From the sequence record PP942979.1: a stretch of DNA of 64,000 nucleotides; one strand, 5' to 3'. A model generated the notes under the pieces. That model ran no database searches, was not told where the DNA came from, and was given only the letters and a program-made list of their open reading frames with translations. Below are positions 1,761-34,467 of this stretch, piece by piece. The position numbers and the translations under genes were made by a program. Every line of letters starts with the position of its first letter. Position 1 is the first letter of the stretch.

Positions 1761-2096
1761 ATGGGTAACCAGCATCGTTATGTAGCTTCGGTAGAACGTC
1801 GCTTTTATGGACCTCAATGGTTGGCGCTATGCGACCTGATTAAGGTAGAGCCTCAGACGTGTGGTGCGTTCGCAAAGAACGGCCATATGATGGGACTGAC
1901 TCTGCCTAAAGAGTTTGATGTTGAAGCTGCAACAAAGAGCCTGCGCCTTGTCTACGCAGTCAAGGAAGAAGACGTGGCCGTGCGCTGTTACCTGTTCGGT
2001 ACTCGCTACTACAAGTTCGTTTTCTTTGAACAAACAATTGCCGTAAGCGAGGATGATTATGAGAACGTTCGCAAACGTACCAGCGCGAGTCAATGA
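1761..2096 (+). CDS. Hypothetical protein
   Basis: 111-aa ORF divergent from primase. Confidence 0.75.
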   Translation: MGNQHRYVASVERRFYGPQWLALCDLIKVEPQTCGAFAKNGHMMGLTLPKEFDVEAATKSLRLVYAVKEEDVAVRCYLFGTRYYKFVFFEQTIAVSEDDYENVRKRTSASQ

Positions 2097-3144
2097 TACC
2101 CGCGCTCTGTCTCGCATAGGCAAGATGATCGATGCGGCACTCGACGTAAAAAATCAAGAGAAGCGCTGGCCAAAGAAACGCGTCAGCCCTTCAATGTTTC
2201 CTATCTGCGCGATTCAAGAAACTGCCAAACTGATTTACCAGAAGCACAACAAGTGCATGACAGGTGAGTCTGGTACGTTGCTGAACATCTTTGCGAAAGC
2301 AGGGACAGGGATGCACGAATCGTTACAGAACGCACTGGGTCATAGTGGTCAGATGGTTGGCCACTGGAAATGTACGAACGAAAAATGCCCTGAATACCCA
2401 AAGACCAAAGGTAAAATGGTTGACGGTAAATATAAGAAGGGCAAGTACACGCGAACTCGAAGCACGAACAATCGCTGTCCGACGTGTGATAAACCCATGG
2501 CTTATGCAGAACTAAAAGTCCTGTATAAGTCACTCAAGGGTTACGTCGATGGACTGATCGATAATCTTGATGGCACGTATAGCCTGATCGATTTGAAATC
2601 GACTATGGTGACCAAAGCTGCTGACGGATCTTTCTTCGTTAAGTATCACCGCTTCCAGATCGCAACATACGCATACCTGCTGAAAAAACGTTACGGTTAC
2701 AACATCGTGGACTATACCCTGGTTTACGTGCCACGCGACAACCCGAAGAAGTTTGTCGAAAAGACCTTTGTGTTTGACGAGGCAGAGTCGAAACGTGCCA
2801 AAGACTTTATGATGGAACAAATACGCGCATGGGATGCTGCGGTAAAATCGGCGCGCACTGGTGATCTGCTGCCAGCTATTAAACGAAAGCCGTGCAAGAG
2901 CGCTGAGTATTATTGGGACGAGTTCCACGGATATGACACATGCCCTTTTGTTGACTATTGCTTTATTCAATCACACATGATTGACTTCATGAAGAAGTTA
3001 GAGCAGCGAATCATGGCCAACCCCGACCTAACTTATATGGAAATTGTAAGCACTGGTCGGAAAACTCAACAACAAGGTCTGCTGCCGGACAAGCCGAAGA
3101 AGTCGCAACGTCCGAAGCATATCGTAAAAACATTTGAGCTATGA
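2059..3144 (+). CDS. Cas4/RecB-like PD-(D/E)XK exonuclease with Cys clusters
   Basis: SPSMFPIC...GTGMH, GYVDGL..IDLKS, FQIATYA, C-terminal PC...CPFVDYC; start uncertain (2053/2059/2125). Confidence 0.75.
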   Translation: MRTFANVPARVNDTRALSRIGKMIDAALDVKNQEKRWPKKRVSPSMFPICAIQETAKLIYQKHNKCMTGESGTLLNIFAKAGTGMHESLQNALGHSGQMVGHWKCTNEKCPEYPKTKGKMVDGKYKKGKYTRTRSTNNRCPTCDKPMAYAELKVLYKSLKGYVDGLIDNLDGTYSLIDLKSTMVTKAADGSFFVKYHRFQIATYAYLLKKRYGYNIVDYTLVYVPRDNPKKFVEKTFVFDEAESKRAKDFMMEQIRAWDAAVKSARTGDLLPAIKRKPCKSAEYYWDEFHGYDTCPFVDYCFIQSHMIDFMKKLEQRIMANPDLTYMEIVSTGRKTQQQGLLPDKPKKSQRPKHIVKTFEL

Positions 3145-4531: not shown

Positions 4532-5117
4532 GGCACACAAGCAAGCGAAGCGCGGTAAGCTCGCTCAGGCAGTGAAGACTCTCAGTGCTGCATCTGCCAA
4601 ATCGCGCCGCATGACTAAAGGTGAGAAACGTGCAATTCAGTTGCAGCCGTTCAAACCTCAGATTGTGCCTCAGCCTCCGAAAACTCCTCTGATGGAAAAA
4701 GGTCTGTCGCTTACTGCGCTTATGCGCTCGACACCTCGCCTGATGAAAGAGAACGCGATGGAGTGTTACGTTAACACTGTGAAACGCGGTAAGACTAACA
4801 AAGGTCTGCCGATGATCATGGCTAACGTTCGACACAAAGATCCACTGCGCCCTAATAAAACAGTGCGCATTCACAAGCCGATGATTATCGGTCTGGATGA
4901 CCCGTACAAGCCTATCTCAAAACAAAAGCGTGTGCTGGTCAGTTGTCCTTGTGAGAACTTTGTTTTCATGTGGGAGTATGCGAACGCCGAACACGGCTGT
5001 GCGCGAATCATTTACGGTAATGGCGAACCGCCGGACTTCACTAACCCCGGTCATGCGCCCGGTCTGTGCAAACATCTGATGGCTTTGGCCGATCAAGTCA
5101 AACGCAATGGAGATTAG
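4461..5117 (+). CDS. SWIM zinc-finger protein with Lys-rich N-terminus
   Basis: VSCPCENF...GLCKHL (CxC...CxH); GGAG RBS. Confidence 0.7.
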   Translation: MAYKSQAKKPKKSKAAKEADTRNKAHKQAKRGKLAQAVKTLSAASAKSRRMTKGEKRAIQLQPFKPQIVPQPPKTPLMEKGLSLTALMRSTPRLMKENAMECYVNTVKRGKTNKGLPMIMANVRHKDPLRPNKTVRIHKPMIIGLDDPYKPISKQKRVLVSCPCENFVFMWEYANAEHGCARIIYGNGEPPDFTNPGHAPGLCKHLMALADQVKRNGD

Positions 5118-5119
5118 TT

Positions 5120-5653
5120 TTGAATATCTTCACATCTGATACGCACTACGGAGCCGAACGCACTCTTCAATTTAGTCGCCGCCCATTTGGCAGTGTTCTT
5201 GAGATGGATAAAACCATGCTCGACCGCTGCAATGAGATAGCTACTGAAAAAGATACACTGTACCACGTAGGTGACTTTGGTTCCTATGAGATGGTGCAGC
5301 ACATCTGTGCGCCTGTCATTTTGATTTGCGGTAACTACGAGATCAATGACATGCACAAACAGTTTGCTTCGGACTTCGATGCTTTCCGTGCGCACCTGAT
5401 GCGTTTGGGTTTTGTTGACGTTGTTCGAGATAGTCTGGAAGTGGATGGAATGTATCTCAACCACTACCCAACTAAGCGCCGCGTTGACCAGTTCAGCCTG
5501 TTCGGTCATATTCACGGATTACAGATGGTCAAACGCAATGCGTTAAACGTTGGCGTTGACTGTCATCATTACGCGCCTGTTGATGCAGAGCGCCTACAGT
5601 TCTTCCGTAATGCAATCGAAAATCATTACGACGAAGACGTGTTTGGTTCATAA
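5120..5653 (+). CDS. Calcineurin-like metallophosphoesterase
   Basis: SDTHYG, HVGDFG, GNYE, NHYP, GHIHG, NVGVD motifs; TTG start after GGAG. Confidence 0.85.
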   Translation: MNIFTSDTHYGAERTLQFSRRPFGSVLEMDKTMLDRCNEIATEKDTLYHVGDFGSYEMVQHICAPVILICGNYEINDMHKQFASDFDAFRAHLMRLGFVDVVRDSLEVDGMYLNHYPTKRRVDQFSLFGHIHGLQMVKRNALNVGVDCHHYAPVDAERLQFFRNAIENHYDEDVFGS

Positions 5654-6576: not shown

Positions 6577-7305
6577 ATGATGAACAATCTCGTTGGAACA
6601 GCGTGTGCCTTAGACTCCTGCCGCTTCTATGCAGAGAATATGGTGCACATACAATTCGGCAGTTCTCTTTGTCCTGTGTCGCCTCAACCGCCATACAATC
6701 AACCTGTCAATAATCGCAATCTGCATTCGTGGATTGAAAGTATTGAACTGGCGTTTGACAATGCAATCAGTCGTACCGATCTGCAATTCCCGTACGCAGG
6801 CATTCTCTATCGTTTCCGTTCTATCTACGGGAACTATGTGGCCCAATACCGCGATGACATTTCGGCTGGTCGTCAGTATCGTGCGAAAGTAGGAACTCCG
6901 TTGGATGCGGTGCCGGAGCGGATTGAGGGCGAACATGCGAAAGAGTTTGCTTCTCGCTTCTTCAACTACACGGCAGGCCAAGTGACCGCGTTCTTATACA
7001 TGGTCTGTCTCGATCAGTATGCTCGTGAACAAACAGACTGCTATCTACCTGACCCACCACGAGCATTCGATTTGCCTCAGAACATCTTCAACGAAAGCCC
7101 TACCGCTTTCACGAAGACACACGACGTTCTGGTTAATCATCTGATGGAAGCGATGTTGCAGACGCATAGCGATACGCTGGACATTCATGTGTCGTTGCGT
7201 GATTACGGTCTGTCTGTTATCTTCCCGCTGGTGGCTGAGTGTCGCAATGCGATTTACGCCACCTGGCCAATCCCTAATGCCAAAGGACAAAAAGCAAATG
7301 TCTGA
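6577..7305 (+). CDS. Hypothetical protein
   Basis: Long ORF in operon; start 6571/6577/6580. Confidence 0.75.
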   Translation: MMNNLVGTACALDSCRFYAENMVHIQFGSSLCPVSPQPPYNQPVNNRNLHSWIESIELAFDNAISRTDLQFPYAGILYRFRSIYGNYVAQYRDDISAGRQYRAKVGTPLDAVPERIEGEHAKEFASRFFNYTAGQVTAFLYMVCLDQYAREQTDCYLPDPPRAFDLPQNIFNESPTAFTKTHDVLVNHLMEAMLQTHSDTLDIHVSLRDYGLSVIFPLVAECRNAIYATWPIPNAKGQKANV

Positions 7306-7831
7306 TGTTATTCTGTTTGACAATCAGAAAGACTGGGAAGACTTCGGTAGCGCGGTCTACGAAGAATTTCGTCTGAACGTGATGACAGGCAGTAGCAGCG
7401 CCAGTCAGATTCCTACAGTCGCACCGTTCGAAGACGTGAAACACCAACTCAGTTATTCGAACATTCTGCCTGAGGGTGAGCAATCGCCTATCGTTGTGCT
7501 GGACATCCTGATCATGGAAGTTGAACTGGCCGAAGGTGAATCGCGCAACTATAATGCAGACAGTCTGGACGAAGCTGTGCGCAAAGTTGTATCACTGTAT
7601 CAGGCTCGCGCTCGTGATCTAGACTGCCACCTGACTGGTAACTTCATTACTGCCGATCATAAAGTTAATGGTGCGCTGTTGCGTATCTACCGTAATCAGG
7701 ACTTCGTGTGCAAAGGCCATCCTGAACTTCTGCACGGACGTCCTCTGGGCATGTTCCATTGTGACAAGTGCGGTGAGATGCAAATGGCCGGAGCATTCCA
7801 CTTGCCTAAAGAGGAAACTCAAAATGGTTAA
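7298..7831 (+). CDS. Hypothetical protein with C-terminal CxxH...CxxC
   Basis: MSDVILFD start overlaps upstream stop; VCKGHP...FHCDKCG. Confidence 0.75.
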   Translation: MSDVILFDNQKDWEDFGSAVYEEFRLNVMTGSSSASQIPTVAPFEDVKHQLSYSNILPEGEQSPIVVLDILIMEVELAEGESRNYNADSLDEAVRKVVSLYQARARDLDCHLTGNFITADHKVNGALLRIYRNQDFVCKGHPELLHGRPLGMFHCDKCGEMQMAGAFHLPKEETQNG

Positions 7832-8291
7832 AGGCGGACTGTGGCGCGTCTTCCCTGATTACGACTCAGAGGAGATGCTGCTCAAACTCGGTGCTGCTAT
7901 CGGTATCGACCGTGACAGTGATGACGTGCCTGATGAATTGCACGTTACTCTGGCTTACGATGAATCGAACCCTGACGTTGAAGCAGAGCAAAACGATGCG
8001 GGCCAGTTCTTTGGCACCGTTGCCTCTGCTGAATTGTTCGGCGAAGGTCAAGATAAGATTCTGGTGCTCGTACTCGAATCGCCTGACCTGCAACAGGAAC
8101 ACGCTCGTATTCATGCGTGTGGTGCTGCCAAGTTTGCGCACACTCCATACCGCCCGCATGTGACGTTACTCAAACATGCAAAAGACAGCCAAGCTGAATA
8201 TCTCAACCAGATCATTCAGCATCCGGGCCGTCCTCCAATCACTCTGCGCTTCATCGAAGAAGATCGCAAGGTGCTGGAGAAGCGTAGCTAA
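7824..8291 (+). CDS. 2H phosphoesterase, Acb1 (T4 gp57B)-like
   Basis: Two HxT motifs (LHVTLAY, YRPHVTL); LVLVLESPDLQQEH resembles Acb1 LVLVLDSEYLRCRH; similar size. Confidence 0.75.
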   Translation: MVKGGLWRVFPDYDSEEMLLKLGAAIGIDRDSDDVPDELHVTLAYDESNPDVEAEQNDAGQFFGTVASAELFGEGQDKILVLVLESPDLQQEHARIHACGAAKFAHTPYRPHVTLLKHAKDSQAEYLNQIIQHPGRPPITLRFIEEDRKVLEKRS

Positions 8292-8296
8292 AACCT

Positions 8297-8323
8297 AGCG
8301 GTGGCCTTGGGCTGCCGCTTTTG
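8297..8323 (+). terminator. Intrinsic terminator
   Basis: AGCGGTGGCC-TTG-GGCTGCCGCT then TTT. Confidence 0.65.
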
Positions 8324-9792: not shown

Positions 9793-11055
9793 ATGGCACG
9801 TGGATTTGGTGACATTCAAGATAACAGCAAACGCGATAGTTTGCGTGAATCAGAAATCTTTGAAATCTTCCCGCTGGCGAAGAAAGCAAACGGCAACTGG
9901 GTTTCAATTCGTCTGTTAGATCTCGACCTGCTTCCGATTAAGAAGCACTGGATCAAGATCATGGGCGGGAAAGACAAAGACAAAGAGATCAAAATCCCGC
10001 GCATGTGCGTTAGCTTCGACCCGGACAATCAGAACAAACCTCTGAACGGTATGAAGTGTCCGTACTGCGGCATCGCTCACGGCAACGACGAATCTGGTGC
10101 ACCGGCGCAGTACGACTATAAGTGGTACGCACAGGCAATCATTCGTGACGAGCAGGCTGCTGCGCCGCGTAAAATGCCGAAGATGACCAAGAAAGAAGAG
10201 AAGTCAGGCAAGAAAGAAATGGGCAGCGAGTCCTGGACTCCTGTGCAGTGTATTCCTCTGTCTAACTCTCTGGCTGGTAAAATCCGCGAGCTGGGTGAAC
10301 GTAATATTCACACGGTCAAAGACAAAAAGTCTGGCAAGAAGTCTAAGCAGGCGTTTCAGGTTAACCATCCGAAGTATGGCTGCGATATTGAAATCAAATA
10401 CAACGCCAAAAAATCTCCGGCAGAGCGTTACACCATCGAACGTGGCGATCATACTCCACTGACGAAAGAAGAACAGGCGTACCTGACCTGGGACTTCGAC
10501 AACTGGAACGAAATCTACGACATGCTGGGCCGTCTGAACGAAGAAGCTGCTATGGCTGACTTCAAGAAGATGGACGTTATCGGCGTTAACACCAACGATT
10601 CTGACGATGGTGATGACGATGACGATGACGACGATGCTATGGCGCTGGGCCGCAAAAAGAAAGGCGGCAAAGCGGACAAGAAAAAACGTCGCAGCGATGA
10701 TGACGATGACGACGAAGATGACGACGATGATGAAGATGATCGTCCTTCCAAGAAGTCTAAAAAGGCGACCAAGTCTCGTAAGATGTTAGACGATGACGAG
10801 GACGATGACGACGAAGACGACGAAGATGATCGTCCGTCGAAGAAAAAGAAATCTTCGAAAGACAAAAAGTCCTCGAAGGTTAAGTCTAAGAAGTCTAAGA
10901 AGTCAGATGATGACGACGAAGACGACGAAGACGAAAAGCCTAAGAAGAAGAAAAAGTCTTCTGACAAGGTGAAGTCTTCCGTTAAGAAGAAAAAGAAATC
11001 TTCTGACGACGATGACGACGACGCGCCGAAGAAAAAGAAGAAAAAGAAAAAGTAA
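9793..11055 (+). CDS. gp32-like single-stranded DNA-binding protein with long D/K block tail
   Basis: IRLL...HW...C...CPYC...Y....I and GCDIEI...Y pattern of gp32-like SSBs; adjacent to recA. Confidence 0.6.
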   Translation: MARGFGDIQDNSKRDSLRESEIFEIFPLAKKANGNWVSIRLLDLDLLPIKKHWIKIMGGKDKDKEIKIPRMCVSFDPDNQNKPLNGMKCPYCGIAHGNDESGAPAQYDYKWYAQAIIRDEQAAAPRKMPKMTKKEEKSGKKEMGSESWTPVQCIPLSNSLAGKIRELGERNIHTVKDKKSGKKSKQAFQVNHPKYGCDIEIKYNAKKSPAERYTIERGDHTPLTKEEQAYLTWDFDNWNEIYDMLGRLNEEAAMADFKKMDVIGVNTNDSDDGDDDDDDDDAMALGRKKKGGKADKKKRRSDDDDDDEDDDDDEDDRPSKKSKKATKSRKMLDDDEDDDDEDDEDDRPSKKKKSSKDKKSSKVKSKKSKKSDDDDEDDEDEKPKKKKKSSDKVKSSVKKKKKSSDDDDDDAPKKKKKKKK

Positions 11056-11063
11056 TGTGAAAC

Positions 11064-11090
11064 AGGGTGGCTAACGCCGCCCTTTCTTTT
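11064..11090 (+). terminator. Intrinsic terminator
   Basis: AGGGTGGC-TAAC-GCCGCCCT then TTCTTTT. Confidence 0.7.
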
Positions 11091-31498: not shown

Positions 31499-31701
31499 AC
31501 AGACGAATGATCGCTTTGCTTGCGCTGGTGATCTTCTGCTTGGTGGGAGCAGTTGCTTCCGCCGAAGCAGCAAACCACTACAACATTATGTTGTGTCTTG
31601 GCCTGACACTTATGTTTCTGGCAGGCTTCTTTATCTGTGTAGAATGTTTCCGTAAGACTTCGTGGGAACAACAAAACAAAAAGGACAAAAAGAATGGCTA
31701 A
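31495..31701 (+). CDS. Small membrane protein (two hydrophobic segments)
   Basis: ALLALVIFCLVGAVA and IMLCLGLTLMFLAGFFICV. Confidence 0.7.
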   Translation: MNRRMIALLALVIFCLVGAVASAEAANHYNIMLCLGLTLMFLAGFFICVECFRKTSWEQQNKKDKKNG

Positions 31702-32227
31702 ATCACTCGGCGTTTACCTGACGTATGTTCTGCGCCACAAGCCTCAGGATATTGGTATCGCTATGGACACGCAGGGCTGGGTGTCGGTCTCTGACCTGTT
31801 AGAGAAAGCGAAGTATGTTAAGCCAGTCACTCTCGATATGTTAGTCGCAGAAGTAGACGCAGACGAGAAGGGTCGCTTTGAGTTCAATCGTGACCAGACA
31901 AAGATTCGCTGTGTTCAGGGGCACTCGGTCGAGCATGTTATCATCAACATGGAAGAATGGACTGAGTTGGCTCCACTGTATCACGGCACGGCAGAAAAGA
32001 ACGTGTCGTCAATCATGCACGAAGGTATTCTGAAACGCAAACGCAAGCACGTCCATATCAGCAACGATATTGAAACGGCGCAGCGTGTTGGTCAACGTCA
32101 CGGAGAACCTGTTGTGTTTGAGATTGACGCTCGGGCCATGATCACTCACGGCTACAAGTTCTACCGAGCAGAAAACGGTGTTATCCTAACTGACCACGTA
32201 CCGTCCCGATATATCAAGTTGGTGTAG
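31694..32227 (+). CDS. kptA: RNA 2'-phosphotransferase (Tpt1/KptA family)
   Basis: YVLRH.P..IGI.MD.QGWV, KGRFE, IRCVQGHS, LYHGT, RKHVHIS, G.RHG, NGV.LT..VP. Confidence 0.92.
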   Translation: MAKSLGVYLTYVLRHKPQDIGIAMDTQGWVSVSDLLEKAKYVKPVTLDMLVAEVDADEKGRFEFNRDQTKIRCVQGHSVEHVIINMEEWTELAPLYHGTAEKNVSSIMHEGILKRKRKHVHISNDIETAQRVGQRHGEPVVFEIDARAMITHGYKFYRAENGVILTDHVPSRYIKLV

Positions 32228-33060: not shown

Positions 33061-34467
33061 ATGAAAAAGATTAAACACACCTTCCGCCTGACTGACTTGG
33101 TTCGTATTGCCGATGAACTTCCTTCGACCAAGAGCGCTTTCACTTCTGGTGAAGATGCAATTGTTGTTGGTCGTGATGAAACAGAAGATAAGTATAAACT
33201 TCACATCAAGCATGAAGGCGAATGTGCTTGGTATCACGCAGAGCACCTGACGCTGATTAAACACAATCAGAGCGAATTGCTCGACAAGTGGGAAGCCGGT
33301 AAGTACGGCAAGAAGAAAAAGAAAGAGCGCAAGATTCCTGACGAACTGCGCAACTTCACCGCTATTCTGCCTGTGACCTGTAACGCTGATTGCTCTTTCT
33401 GTCCTGAGAAAGAGATGGAGAATAAAGCAGATCAGAAAGCGTGGTCAAACAATCTGATTGCTGCGATTAAGGCACATGGCCATCGCGTTGACCACGTATC
33501 AATCTCTGGCGGTGAGCCTACACTTCGCATGAAGTACCTGTTCGAAACGATCGACCGCATTCGTGCTGAAACAGGTATGCGTAAAGTGGGTCTGACTTCT
33601 AACGGTCAGTTCCTTGAGAAGCACAATCAAACAATGACGTTCCTCGATCTTAACACGGACGAGATGCTGGAGAGCAAGCTATCGCATCTGAATATCAGTA
33701 TGCACTCATTCGACCGTGAGAAAGCAAACAAGATCATGGGCGTCAAGTATACGTGGACGATTGAAGACCTGGTTCGCTTCCGCCGTCAGTTAGGGCGCAA
33801 GCTGAGTTTCCACATCAACTTCGTTATCAACAAAGAGAACATCGACAGCATCGAGTGGGAGTTTCGTCAGGCAAACGAGTTCATGAAAGCAAACCCGTGG
33901 ATAGACGTTGTGTTCCGTGTTGACTACGACAATAAGAAACTAAGCAAAGAACTGCGCAAGTATGGTCAAGCTGTACAGGCTGCGCGTGAAGAAAAGCGTC
34001 CGCGTGATAAGAGCATCAAGTATACTCCTAAGAAAGTCAAAGAACCTGAACTGATTAAACTGTTCAACTCTATCTTTGACGGCAGCTATTACGACGAACT
34101 GACGGAAGAAACTCTGCCTGGTTTCGGTGACACGTTTACTACAGGCTGCCCGTCCTGCTTCACGCATCGTAGTACCGATCTCGGTAACAGCTTTGCGTAT
34201 CTGAAAGCGTCTTCATACGAACCGAACGAAGACGAAGAAGAATATACTGAGATGGTATTCCACATGGACGGCAGCCTGTACTTCGACTGGTCGCGCAAAG
34301 AGCCTGTACCAGAAGTGAAAGCGAAGAAGGCTAAACCTCTGCCTCGTTTGAAGAAAGCTAAGAAGGCTGAACCGAAAGGTTATCCTGATAGCTGCGACTT
34401 TGGTTCTTCTCGTTGTGGATTCACTGGCGGTAACGGGCGTTGTGGTTTCGGTAGCGGCATGTGCTAA
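33061..34467 (+). CDS. Radical SAM protein with N-terminal extra domain and Cys/Gly-rich C-terminal tail
   Basis: CNADCSFC (CX3CX2C), ISGGEPTL, TSNG, LNISMHS. Confidence 0.85.
   Translation: MKKIKHTFRLTDLVRIADELPSTKSAFTSGEDAIVVGRDETEDKYKLHIKHEGECAWYHAEHLTLIKHNQSELLDKWEAGKYGKKKKKERKIPDELRNFTAILPVTCNADCSFCPEKEMENKADQKAWSNNLIAAIKAHGHRVDHVSISGGEPTLRMKYLFETIDRIRAETGMRKVGLTSNGQFLEKHNQTMTFLDLNTDEMLESKLSHLNISMHSFDREKANKIMGVKYTWTIEDLVRFRRQLGRKLSFHINFVINKENIDSIEWEFRQANEFMKANPWIDVVFRVDYDNKKLSKELRKYGQAVQAAREEKRPRDKSIKYTPKKVKEPELIKLFNSIFDGSYYDELTEETLPGFGDTFTTGCPSCFTHRSTDLGNSFAYLKASSYEPNEDEEEYTEMVFHMDGSLYFDWSRKEPVPEVKAKKAKPLPRLKKAKKAEPKGYPDSCDFGSSRCGFTGGNGRCGFGSGMC

Follow-up and report, generated by a model that had tools for sequence, protein, structure and literature searches.

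The question raised by this locus is what a small phage protein, named 'RNA ligase' in its source record but read as an 'Acb1-like' 2H phosphoesterase in first-pass annotation of the DNA, actually does. The window, by which we mean the whole 64,000-nucleotide stretch that was analysed, comes from Erwinia phage phB78 (PP942979.1), an Alexandravirus jumbo phage of 261,824 bp whose isolation host was E. amylovora Ea102. Over the 4 kb surrounding the gene the match to this phage is 100%, and record coordinates equal window coordinates plus 186,000. The 155-amino-acid open reading frame at 7824–8291 that carried the earlier reading, its two HxT motifs and the strings quoted from it are all present in the sequence, with LVLVLESPDLQQEH corresponding to residues 80–93 of the protein and YRPHVTL to residues 109–115.

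The gene and its surroundings

The gene and the elements that flank it are as follows (window coordinates).

7298–7831, + strand: SHZ78_227, 177 aa, matching PHROG 29033, with a C-terminal Cys/His-rich, zinc-ribbon-like segment
7810..7815, + strand: Shine-Dalgarno-like AGAGGA, 8 nt 5' of the ATG of the 2H gene, read from the sequence
7824..8291, + strand: gene for an Acb1-family 2H phosphodiesterase, 155 aa (SHZ78_228, annotated 'RNA ligase'), supported by the ORF listing, Pfam, profile and AF2/Foldseek comparisons
8297..8323, + strand: intrinsic-terminator-like hairpin with T-run (TTTT), 10-bp stem with 7 G-C pairs, 6 nt past the stop codon of the 2H gene, found by pattern scan

The 2H gene is the last of a tightly packed block on the + strand, positioned just upstream of genes for a sigma factor, SSB and a recombinase; its ATG and the stop codon of SHZ78_227 share an 8-nt overlap (ATGGTTAA). 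The N-termini of close relatives fall at the same aligned position as that of the phB78 protein, with some distant relatives carrying 2–14 extra residues. At the DNA level, the region around the gene is matched by 48 phage records (46 Erwinia and 2 Dickeya), and its synteny is maintained across Alexandravirus, Sasquatchvirus (Y3) and Yoloswagvirus; the conserved order being the 177-aa gene, the 2H gene, a ~105-aa gene, a sigma-factor-like gene, SSB and a RecA/UvsX-like gene. SHZ78_227 is itself syntenic in every relative examined. Pairwise Nei-Gojobori dN/dS values for phB78 against the AD1, SNUABM_22, Alexandra and Y3 orthologues lie between 0.04 and 0.13 for non-saturated pairs: the gene is real and under purifying selection. 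In Dickeya phage AD1 the orthologue is annotated 'putative cyclic phosphodiesterase'.

The hairpin beyond the stop codon has a calculated fold of -18.1 kcal/mol, with a z-score of only -1.7 and 10 of 200 shuffles folding equally well. Across the six phages compared, from three genera, neither stem nor T-run varies, even in Yoloswag, where the 2H protein is only 47% identical to that of phB78; the hairpin is better conserved than the flanking coding sequence. Given a conserved hairpin at this point, the 2H gene probably closes a transcription unit. A scan for sigma-70 promoters returned no more sites than in shuffled sequence. A screen of the neighbouring genes with Pfam and PHROGs turned up no other anti-defence function: apart from families of unknown function, the sole matches were to a metallophosphoesterase and a PD-(D/E)XK nuclease.

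Family membership

The Pfam Acb1 model (PF23474) matches the protein with 46.5 bits against a cut-off (GA) of 27 (E 4e-12), the match covering profile positions 31–120 of 144, i.e. the core only; the same model is matched by all 80 of the aligned relatives. Models from elsewhere in the superfamily fall below their thresholds: narrowly for the 2'-5' RNA ligase superfamily model PF13563 (26.9 bits, cut-off 27), and by more for LigT_PEase (PF02834; 18.9 bits against 23.3) and for the NCBIfam ThpR equivalog TIGR02258 (24.1 bits against 65.7).

The protein also matches PHROG 755 ('RNA ligase') with E 2.7e-31. Since T4 gp57B, identified as Acb1 by Hobbs et al. (PMC9117128), matches this same PHROG (5e-68), we take the GenBank label to be a legacy PHROG name. 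An RNA ligase proper, as the record would have it, is scarcely credible: the product name inherited from PHROG 755 is all that speaks for it, whilst a proven phosphodiesterase, T4 Acb1, sits in the same PHROG, no nucleotidyltransferase ligase domain is present, and both LigT_PEase and TIGR02258 stay under their cut-offs. Family and fold comparisons effectively refute that reading.

Searched as a single sequence against PDB chains, the protein returns Acb1 entries only (7T26, E 0.004; 9Q2G, E 0.046). The separation widens with a profile made from an 80-sequence alignment, A1, collected from two protein searches: solved Acb1 structures are matched at 3.6e-25 (7T26), 1.7e-24 (9Q2G) and 8e-22 (9Q2Y), as against E 0.1–0.3 for LigT/ThpR/2'-5' ligase structures (0.23–0.32 for those of LigT), and the plant CPDase structure gives no match at E<=1. 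Taking these data together, it is near certain that the 2H protein belongs to the broad Acb1 family.

Public resources had already made this identification: a relative with 84% identity goes under 'Anti-CBASS protein Acb1' in UniRef, DefenseFinder-based counts of acb1 include Erwinia phages, and Pfam, too, recognises Acb1 here.

Predicted fold and nearest structures

An AlphaFold2 model built on A1 (pLDDT 92.6, pTM 0.87) has the strand/helix order of the 2H fold. Compared with the PDB by Foldseek, a check that the first-pass annotation had itself proposed, ranks 1–5 are all Acb1/PDE-9 entries (9Q2Y, 9Q2G, 7T27, 7T26; TM 0.61–0.76), the best being PDE-9 of Burkholderia phage BCSR5 (9Q2Y/9Q2G; TM 0.75, E 4e-8), followed by FBB1 Acb1 (7T27/7T26; TM 0.61–0.71). 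The Arabidopsis Appr>p cyclic phosphodiesterase comes next (TM ~0.55, E 2e-4), with Usb1, CNPase and LigT lower down (TM ~0.5). Amongst viral models (BFVD), the top matches (TM 0.72–0.84) carry the UniProt name 'Anti-CBASS protein Acb1' and come from further jumbo phages: Dickeya JA29, Yersinia fHe-Yen9-04, Pseudomonas PaBG, Erwinia RisingSun and Edwardsiella pEt-SU. These share the size and fold of the phB78 protein, with JA29 40% identical to it, and the names are automatic.

PDE-9 (9Q2G/9Q2Y), the nearest solved structure, shares a compact 2H core with the phB78 protein, as well as an additional helix, absent from T4 Acb1, that follows the second HxT motif; it differs in having a 15-residue N-terminal lid (Doherty et al., bioRxiv 10.1101/2025.08.21.671373), missing from phB78, and pairwise identity is ~20%, in a comparison drawn from HMMER and Foldseek output only. 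BCSR5 is absent among the 40 listed of the 1,349 records matched by tblastn with a PDE-9-like relative as query. T4 gp57B and Acb1 of Erwinia phage FBB1 (7T26/7T27), also single-domain proteins of ~150 aa, belong to the same Pfam family and PHROG as the phB78 protein and are 20–24% identical to it; relative to T4 Acb1, the phB78 protein has a 9-residue insertion after motif 2, which forms the helix. LigT/ThpR and the Arabidopsis CPDase have in common with it the 2H superfamily fold and two HxT/S motifs but are larger (170–190 aa), with TM values of only ~0.5–0.55 and profile E of 0.1 or worse.

Pfam, PHROG 755, the A1 profile and Foldseek thus all place the protein with Acb1, in line with the identity first proposed. 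The earlier annotation had also named closer similarity to LigT/ThpR-type RNA-processing enzymes as the outcome that would tell against it; Acb1 proves the closer by profile and by fold (TM ~0.5 for LigT), with TIGR02258 below cut-off, and on the scores given here (TIGR02258, PF02834, profile E and TM) we reject membership of LigT/ThpR.

A related reading, prompted by two other genes of the phage, has to do with function.

31694–32227: gene for a Tpt1/KptA-family RNA 2'-phosphotransferase (PF01885, 154 bits)
10481–11074 of the record, outside the window: macrodomain gene, annotated O-acetyl-ADP-ribose deacetylase

With these as partners, the 2H protein could be a LigT/ThpR/CPDase-type phosphodiesterase acting on RNA ends or on ADP-ribose-1'',2''-cyclic phosphate, the combination of Tpt1, macrodomain and 2H CPDase recalling how fungi and plants handle the by-products of tRNA ligation. 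Tpt1 is shared by these Erwinia and Dickeya jumbo phages, the Arabidopsis Appr>p phosphodiesterase is the first Foldseek match after Acb1, and PF13563 is missed by a fraction of a bit. We nonetheless consider this improbable: profile E-values for Acb1 and for LigT/ThpR differ by more than 20 orders of magnitude in favour of Acb1, with CPDase unmatched at the threshold used; the TIGR02258 score is far from its cut-off; the 2H, Tpt1 and macrodomain genes are ~24 kb to 80 kb apart; and gp57B matches ~1,500 T4-like phage records, whereas Tpt1 matches 98 records, none of them T4-like among the organisms listed. The annotation of the whole 262-kb phB78 record lists neither an RNA ligase (the 2H gene's own label aside) nor RtcB nor a polynucleotide kinase; this is weak evidence, as many phB78 genes are merely 'hypothetical'. 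Most of the 98 records with Tpt1/KptA belong to jumbo phages of Erwinia, Dickeya and Klebsiella.

Catalytic residues and ligand contacts

For Acb1, the catalytic tetrad is H44/T46/H113/T115 and the bases are stacked by Y12, W74, F107 and W147 (Hobbs et al. 2022, PMC9117128); a C-terminal lid is formed by residues 145–152 (PMC9117128). Because E141 reads adenine N6, T4 Acb1 needs adenosine and leaves cGG uncleaved (PMC9117128). All nine of these named residues are confirmed in T4 gp57B by identity and number. We transferred them with a second alignment, A2, of the phB78 protein with T4 gp57B and two T4-like homologues, in which identity at the C-terminal strand is ~20%; the pocket and ligand contacts given here are thus assigned from alignments at about that identity.

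7839..7844, + strand: L6-W7; L6 at the position of base-stacking Tyr12 of T4, W7 conserved throughout the subfamily
7941..7949, + strand: first HxT motif, H40-V-T42, equivalent to T4 H44/T46; invariant in 80 of 80 relatives
8037..8039, + strand: F72, equivalent to base-stacking Trp74 of T4 Acb1
8139..8141, + strand: H106, at the position of base-stacking Phe107 of T4 Acb1
8157..8165, + strand: second HxT motif, H112-V-T114, equivalent to T4 H113/T115; H112 invariant and position 114 T or S in 80 of 80 relatives
8268..8288, + strand: K149 and a short C-terminal tail (150–155); K149 at the position of the adenine-N6-reading Glu141 of T4 Acb1

As aligned, the catalytic tetrad of the phB78 protein is intact, and conserved His93 and Tyr109 are present too. 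The aromatic at the W74 position is Phe also in the T4-like Erwinia phage IT22. Elsewhere in the pocket the correspondence with T4 Acb1 is looser, with L6 in place of Y12, H106 in place of F107 and K149 in place of E141. The Phe107-equivalent position is F, H or Y in sister phages and lies in the loop that the model predicts with lowest confidence (block mean pLDDT 75).

At the C-terminus, Ser155, the last residue of the phB78 protein, aligns at T4 Trp147, such that three of eight lid positions exist and the tail carries no aromatic; the lid is therefore cut off, with five of its eight residues and the Trp gone. A Trp in the C-terminal tail is found in only 6 of 80 relatives. At the other end, a PDE-9-type lid (~15 residues) is likewise absent, there being five residues ahead of the Tyr12-equivalent position in phB78 and at least 13 in 48 of the 80 relatives. 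In detail, then, the protein is by alignment not a T4-type Acb1: tetrad and one stacker are kept, two contacts are replaced, the one at Phe107 is ambiguous and the lid is mostly gone.

Two of the replacements travel together. Leu at position 6 is seen in phB78 and 8 of 10 close relatives, with Tyr kept in relatives at <=68% identity; Lys at position 149 is seen in phB78 and 7 of 10 close relatives, with Glu in 8 of 9 at middle distance. At >=75% identity (n=8, phB78 included) the pair reads L/K in seven and L/T in one, and at 36–68% identity it reads Y/E in 9 of 11; Y/E is also the commonest state of the wider family (29/80). In the literature searched we found neither a characterised member of the L6/K149 clade nor a description of the lid-less L6/K149 variant.

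A probable anti-signalling role

We think it likely that the phB78 protein cleaves cyclic oligonucleotide immune signals, independently of metal, and so serves an anti-signalling role; substrate class and anti-defence role are both inferred from homology to Acb1, whose mechanism is metal-independent and proceeds via a 2',3'-cyclic phosphate intermediate (PMC9117128). On this model, the protein would target the 3'-5' phosphodiester bonds of host cyclic di-/trinucleotide signals, such as those of CBASS, with H40/T42 and H112/T114 acting as the acid-base tetrad. The ribose 2'-OH would attack the phosphate to give a 2',3'-cyclic phosphate intermediate, and hydrolysis of this would yield a linear 3'-phosphate product; the signal being destroyed, the host effector would never be switched on.

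Studies of viral 2H phosphodiesterases give some idea of the range to be expected. T4 Acb1 is broad on messengers, members of structural group 3 (to which the broad Acb1 family corresponds) degrade CBASS messengers and some structural groups are inactive on every messenger tested (bioRxiv 10.1101/2025.08.21.671373). PDE-9 cleaves 3'3'-cGAMP and largely spares 2'3'-c-di-AMP (Doherty et al., bioRxiv 10.1101/2025.08.21.671373), by virtue of which it avoids triggering Panoptes. Substrate choice is set by the core and not by the lid (Doherty et al., bioRxiv 10.1101/2025.08.21.671373); when the T4 Acb1 lid is deleted Panoptes is no longer activated, and the authors take this to mean that catalysis needs the lid (bioRxiv 10.1101/2025.08.21.671373). 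Against this background, three points above all call for caution about an anti-signalling role: the absence of a lid, the replacement of Glu by Lys and the existence of viral 2H groups inactive on every messenger tried.

Because phB78 lacks both types of lid and has Leu for Tyr12 and Lys for Glu141, it probably has a substrate spectrum unlike that of T4 Acb1. At first pass, what was there called a divergent jumbo-phage member was suggested to have possibly another range of substrates, and the residue map (Y12 to L6, E141 to K149, F107 to H106, no Trp147 lid) is compatible with this.

How far the difference might go is a more speculative matter. Family and chemistry could be retained and the target shifted, the lid-less Leu6/Lys149 clade having moved off the adenine-dependent broad spectrum and toward G-containing signals or a narrow subset of messengers, much as PDE-9 spares 2'3'-c-di-AMP and with it Panoptes; we regard this as possible but rather unlikely. 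In its favour, Lys replaces the very Glu that reads adenine N6 in T4 Acb1, the Y-to-L and E-to-K changes are coupled at >=75% identity as described above, substrate choice in this group of enzymes lies in the core, and the closest solved structure is the selective PDE-9. Set against these, the argument is one of sequence alignment, at ~20% identity in the C-terminal strand, and Lys149 could equally be neutral or merely weaken binding. In its fullest form, to which we give only a minor share of belief, the Alexandravirus/Sasquatchvirus clade would represent a minimal, lid-less Acb1 in which coupled Tyr12-to-Leu and Glu141-to-Lys changes re-tune base recognition, either for guanine-containing or non-canonical messengers or so as to spare the decoys of Panoptes-like guards. 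If true, the clade would be a natural case of specificity switching in an anti-signalling enzyme.

Which host system the proposed cleavage of immune signals would counter is a separate matter. In a 2026 pangenome study, DefenseFinder calls acb1 in 61 of 227 Erwinia phage genomes, more often than any other anti-defence gene, and its presence correlates with phage dam (2026 pangenome study); a dam gene is also annotated in phB78. In the 317 E. amylovora genomes of that study, CBASS type I appears only among the rare systems (2026 pangenome study). CBASS is thus evidently rare in E. amylovora itself, a point against the anti-signalling reading as far as this host goes, so that the phB78 gene may owe its selection to different hosts or to signalling systems other than CBASS.

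Correcting the misleading 'RNA ligase' label affects a core gene of ~50 or more Erwinia/Dickeya jumbo phages, some of which are under development against fire blight, and which probably bear a counter-measure to cyclic-nucleotide immunity. According to a 2026 review, no anti-defence protein other than Tad1 has yet been described in jumbo phages (PMC13282480), so that a characterised Acb1-type enzyme would add a second class. A clade with neither type of lid and no adenine-reading Glu also offers a natural variant for studying substrate choice in viral 2H phosphodiesterases.

Acb1-like domains in virion proteins

In other phages, Acb1-like 2H domains turn up fused to virion proteins or annotated as part of them. 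One lies within the portal protein of cyanophage Pam3 (PDB 8HDS chain A, residues 481–610; E 8e-14). Weak tblastn matches are annotated as the portal of Synechococcus phage Yong-M2-251 (E 0.4) and a prohead protease of Roseobacter phage DSS3P8 (E 4), and a further match, in Erwinia phage pEa_SNUABM_50, as a structural protein. These are hints that some phages carry an Acb1-like enzyme in the particle.

Other genes of the window

Several further genes were noted.

2059–3144: gene annotated 'CRISPR/Cas system associated-protein', matching only the generic PD-(D/E)XK nuclease model PF12705 (33.6 bits)
5066–5653 (ORF), 5216–5653 (annotated CDS): SHZ78_222, 'phosphoesterase', PHROG 547 metallophosphoesterase
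33061–34467: gene for a radical SAM protein of 468 aa (PF04055, 54.7 bits), ~830 nt (two small ORFs) downstream of Tpt1

The first is Cas4-like at best, with no CRISPR context seen. In the annotated SSB (gene at 9793–11055), poly-Asp/Glu blocks alternate with poly-Lys/Ser blocks along an extended C-terminal tail, a low-complexity segment that is the source of many spurious antisense ORFs. In the longer ORF at SHZ78_222, the PHROG 547 match already begins at residue 21, which lies 5' of the annotated start (5216); the protein as annotated thus probably lacks N-terminal sequence of the domain. In Yoloswag the orthologue of this gene is annotated longer, at 534 nt.
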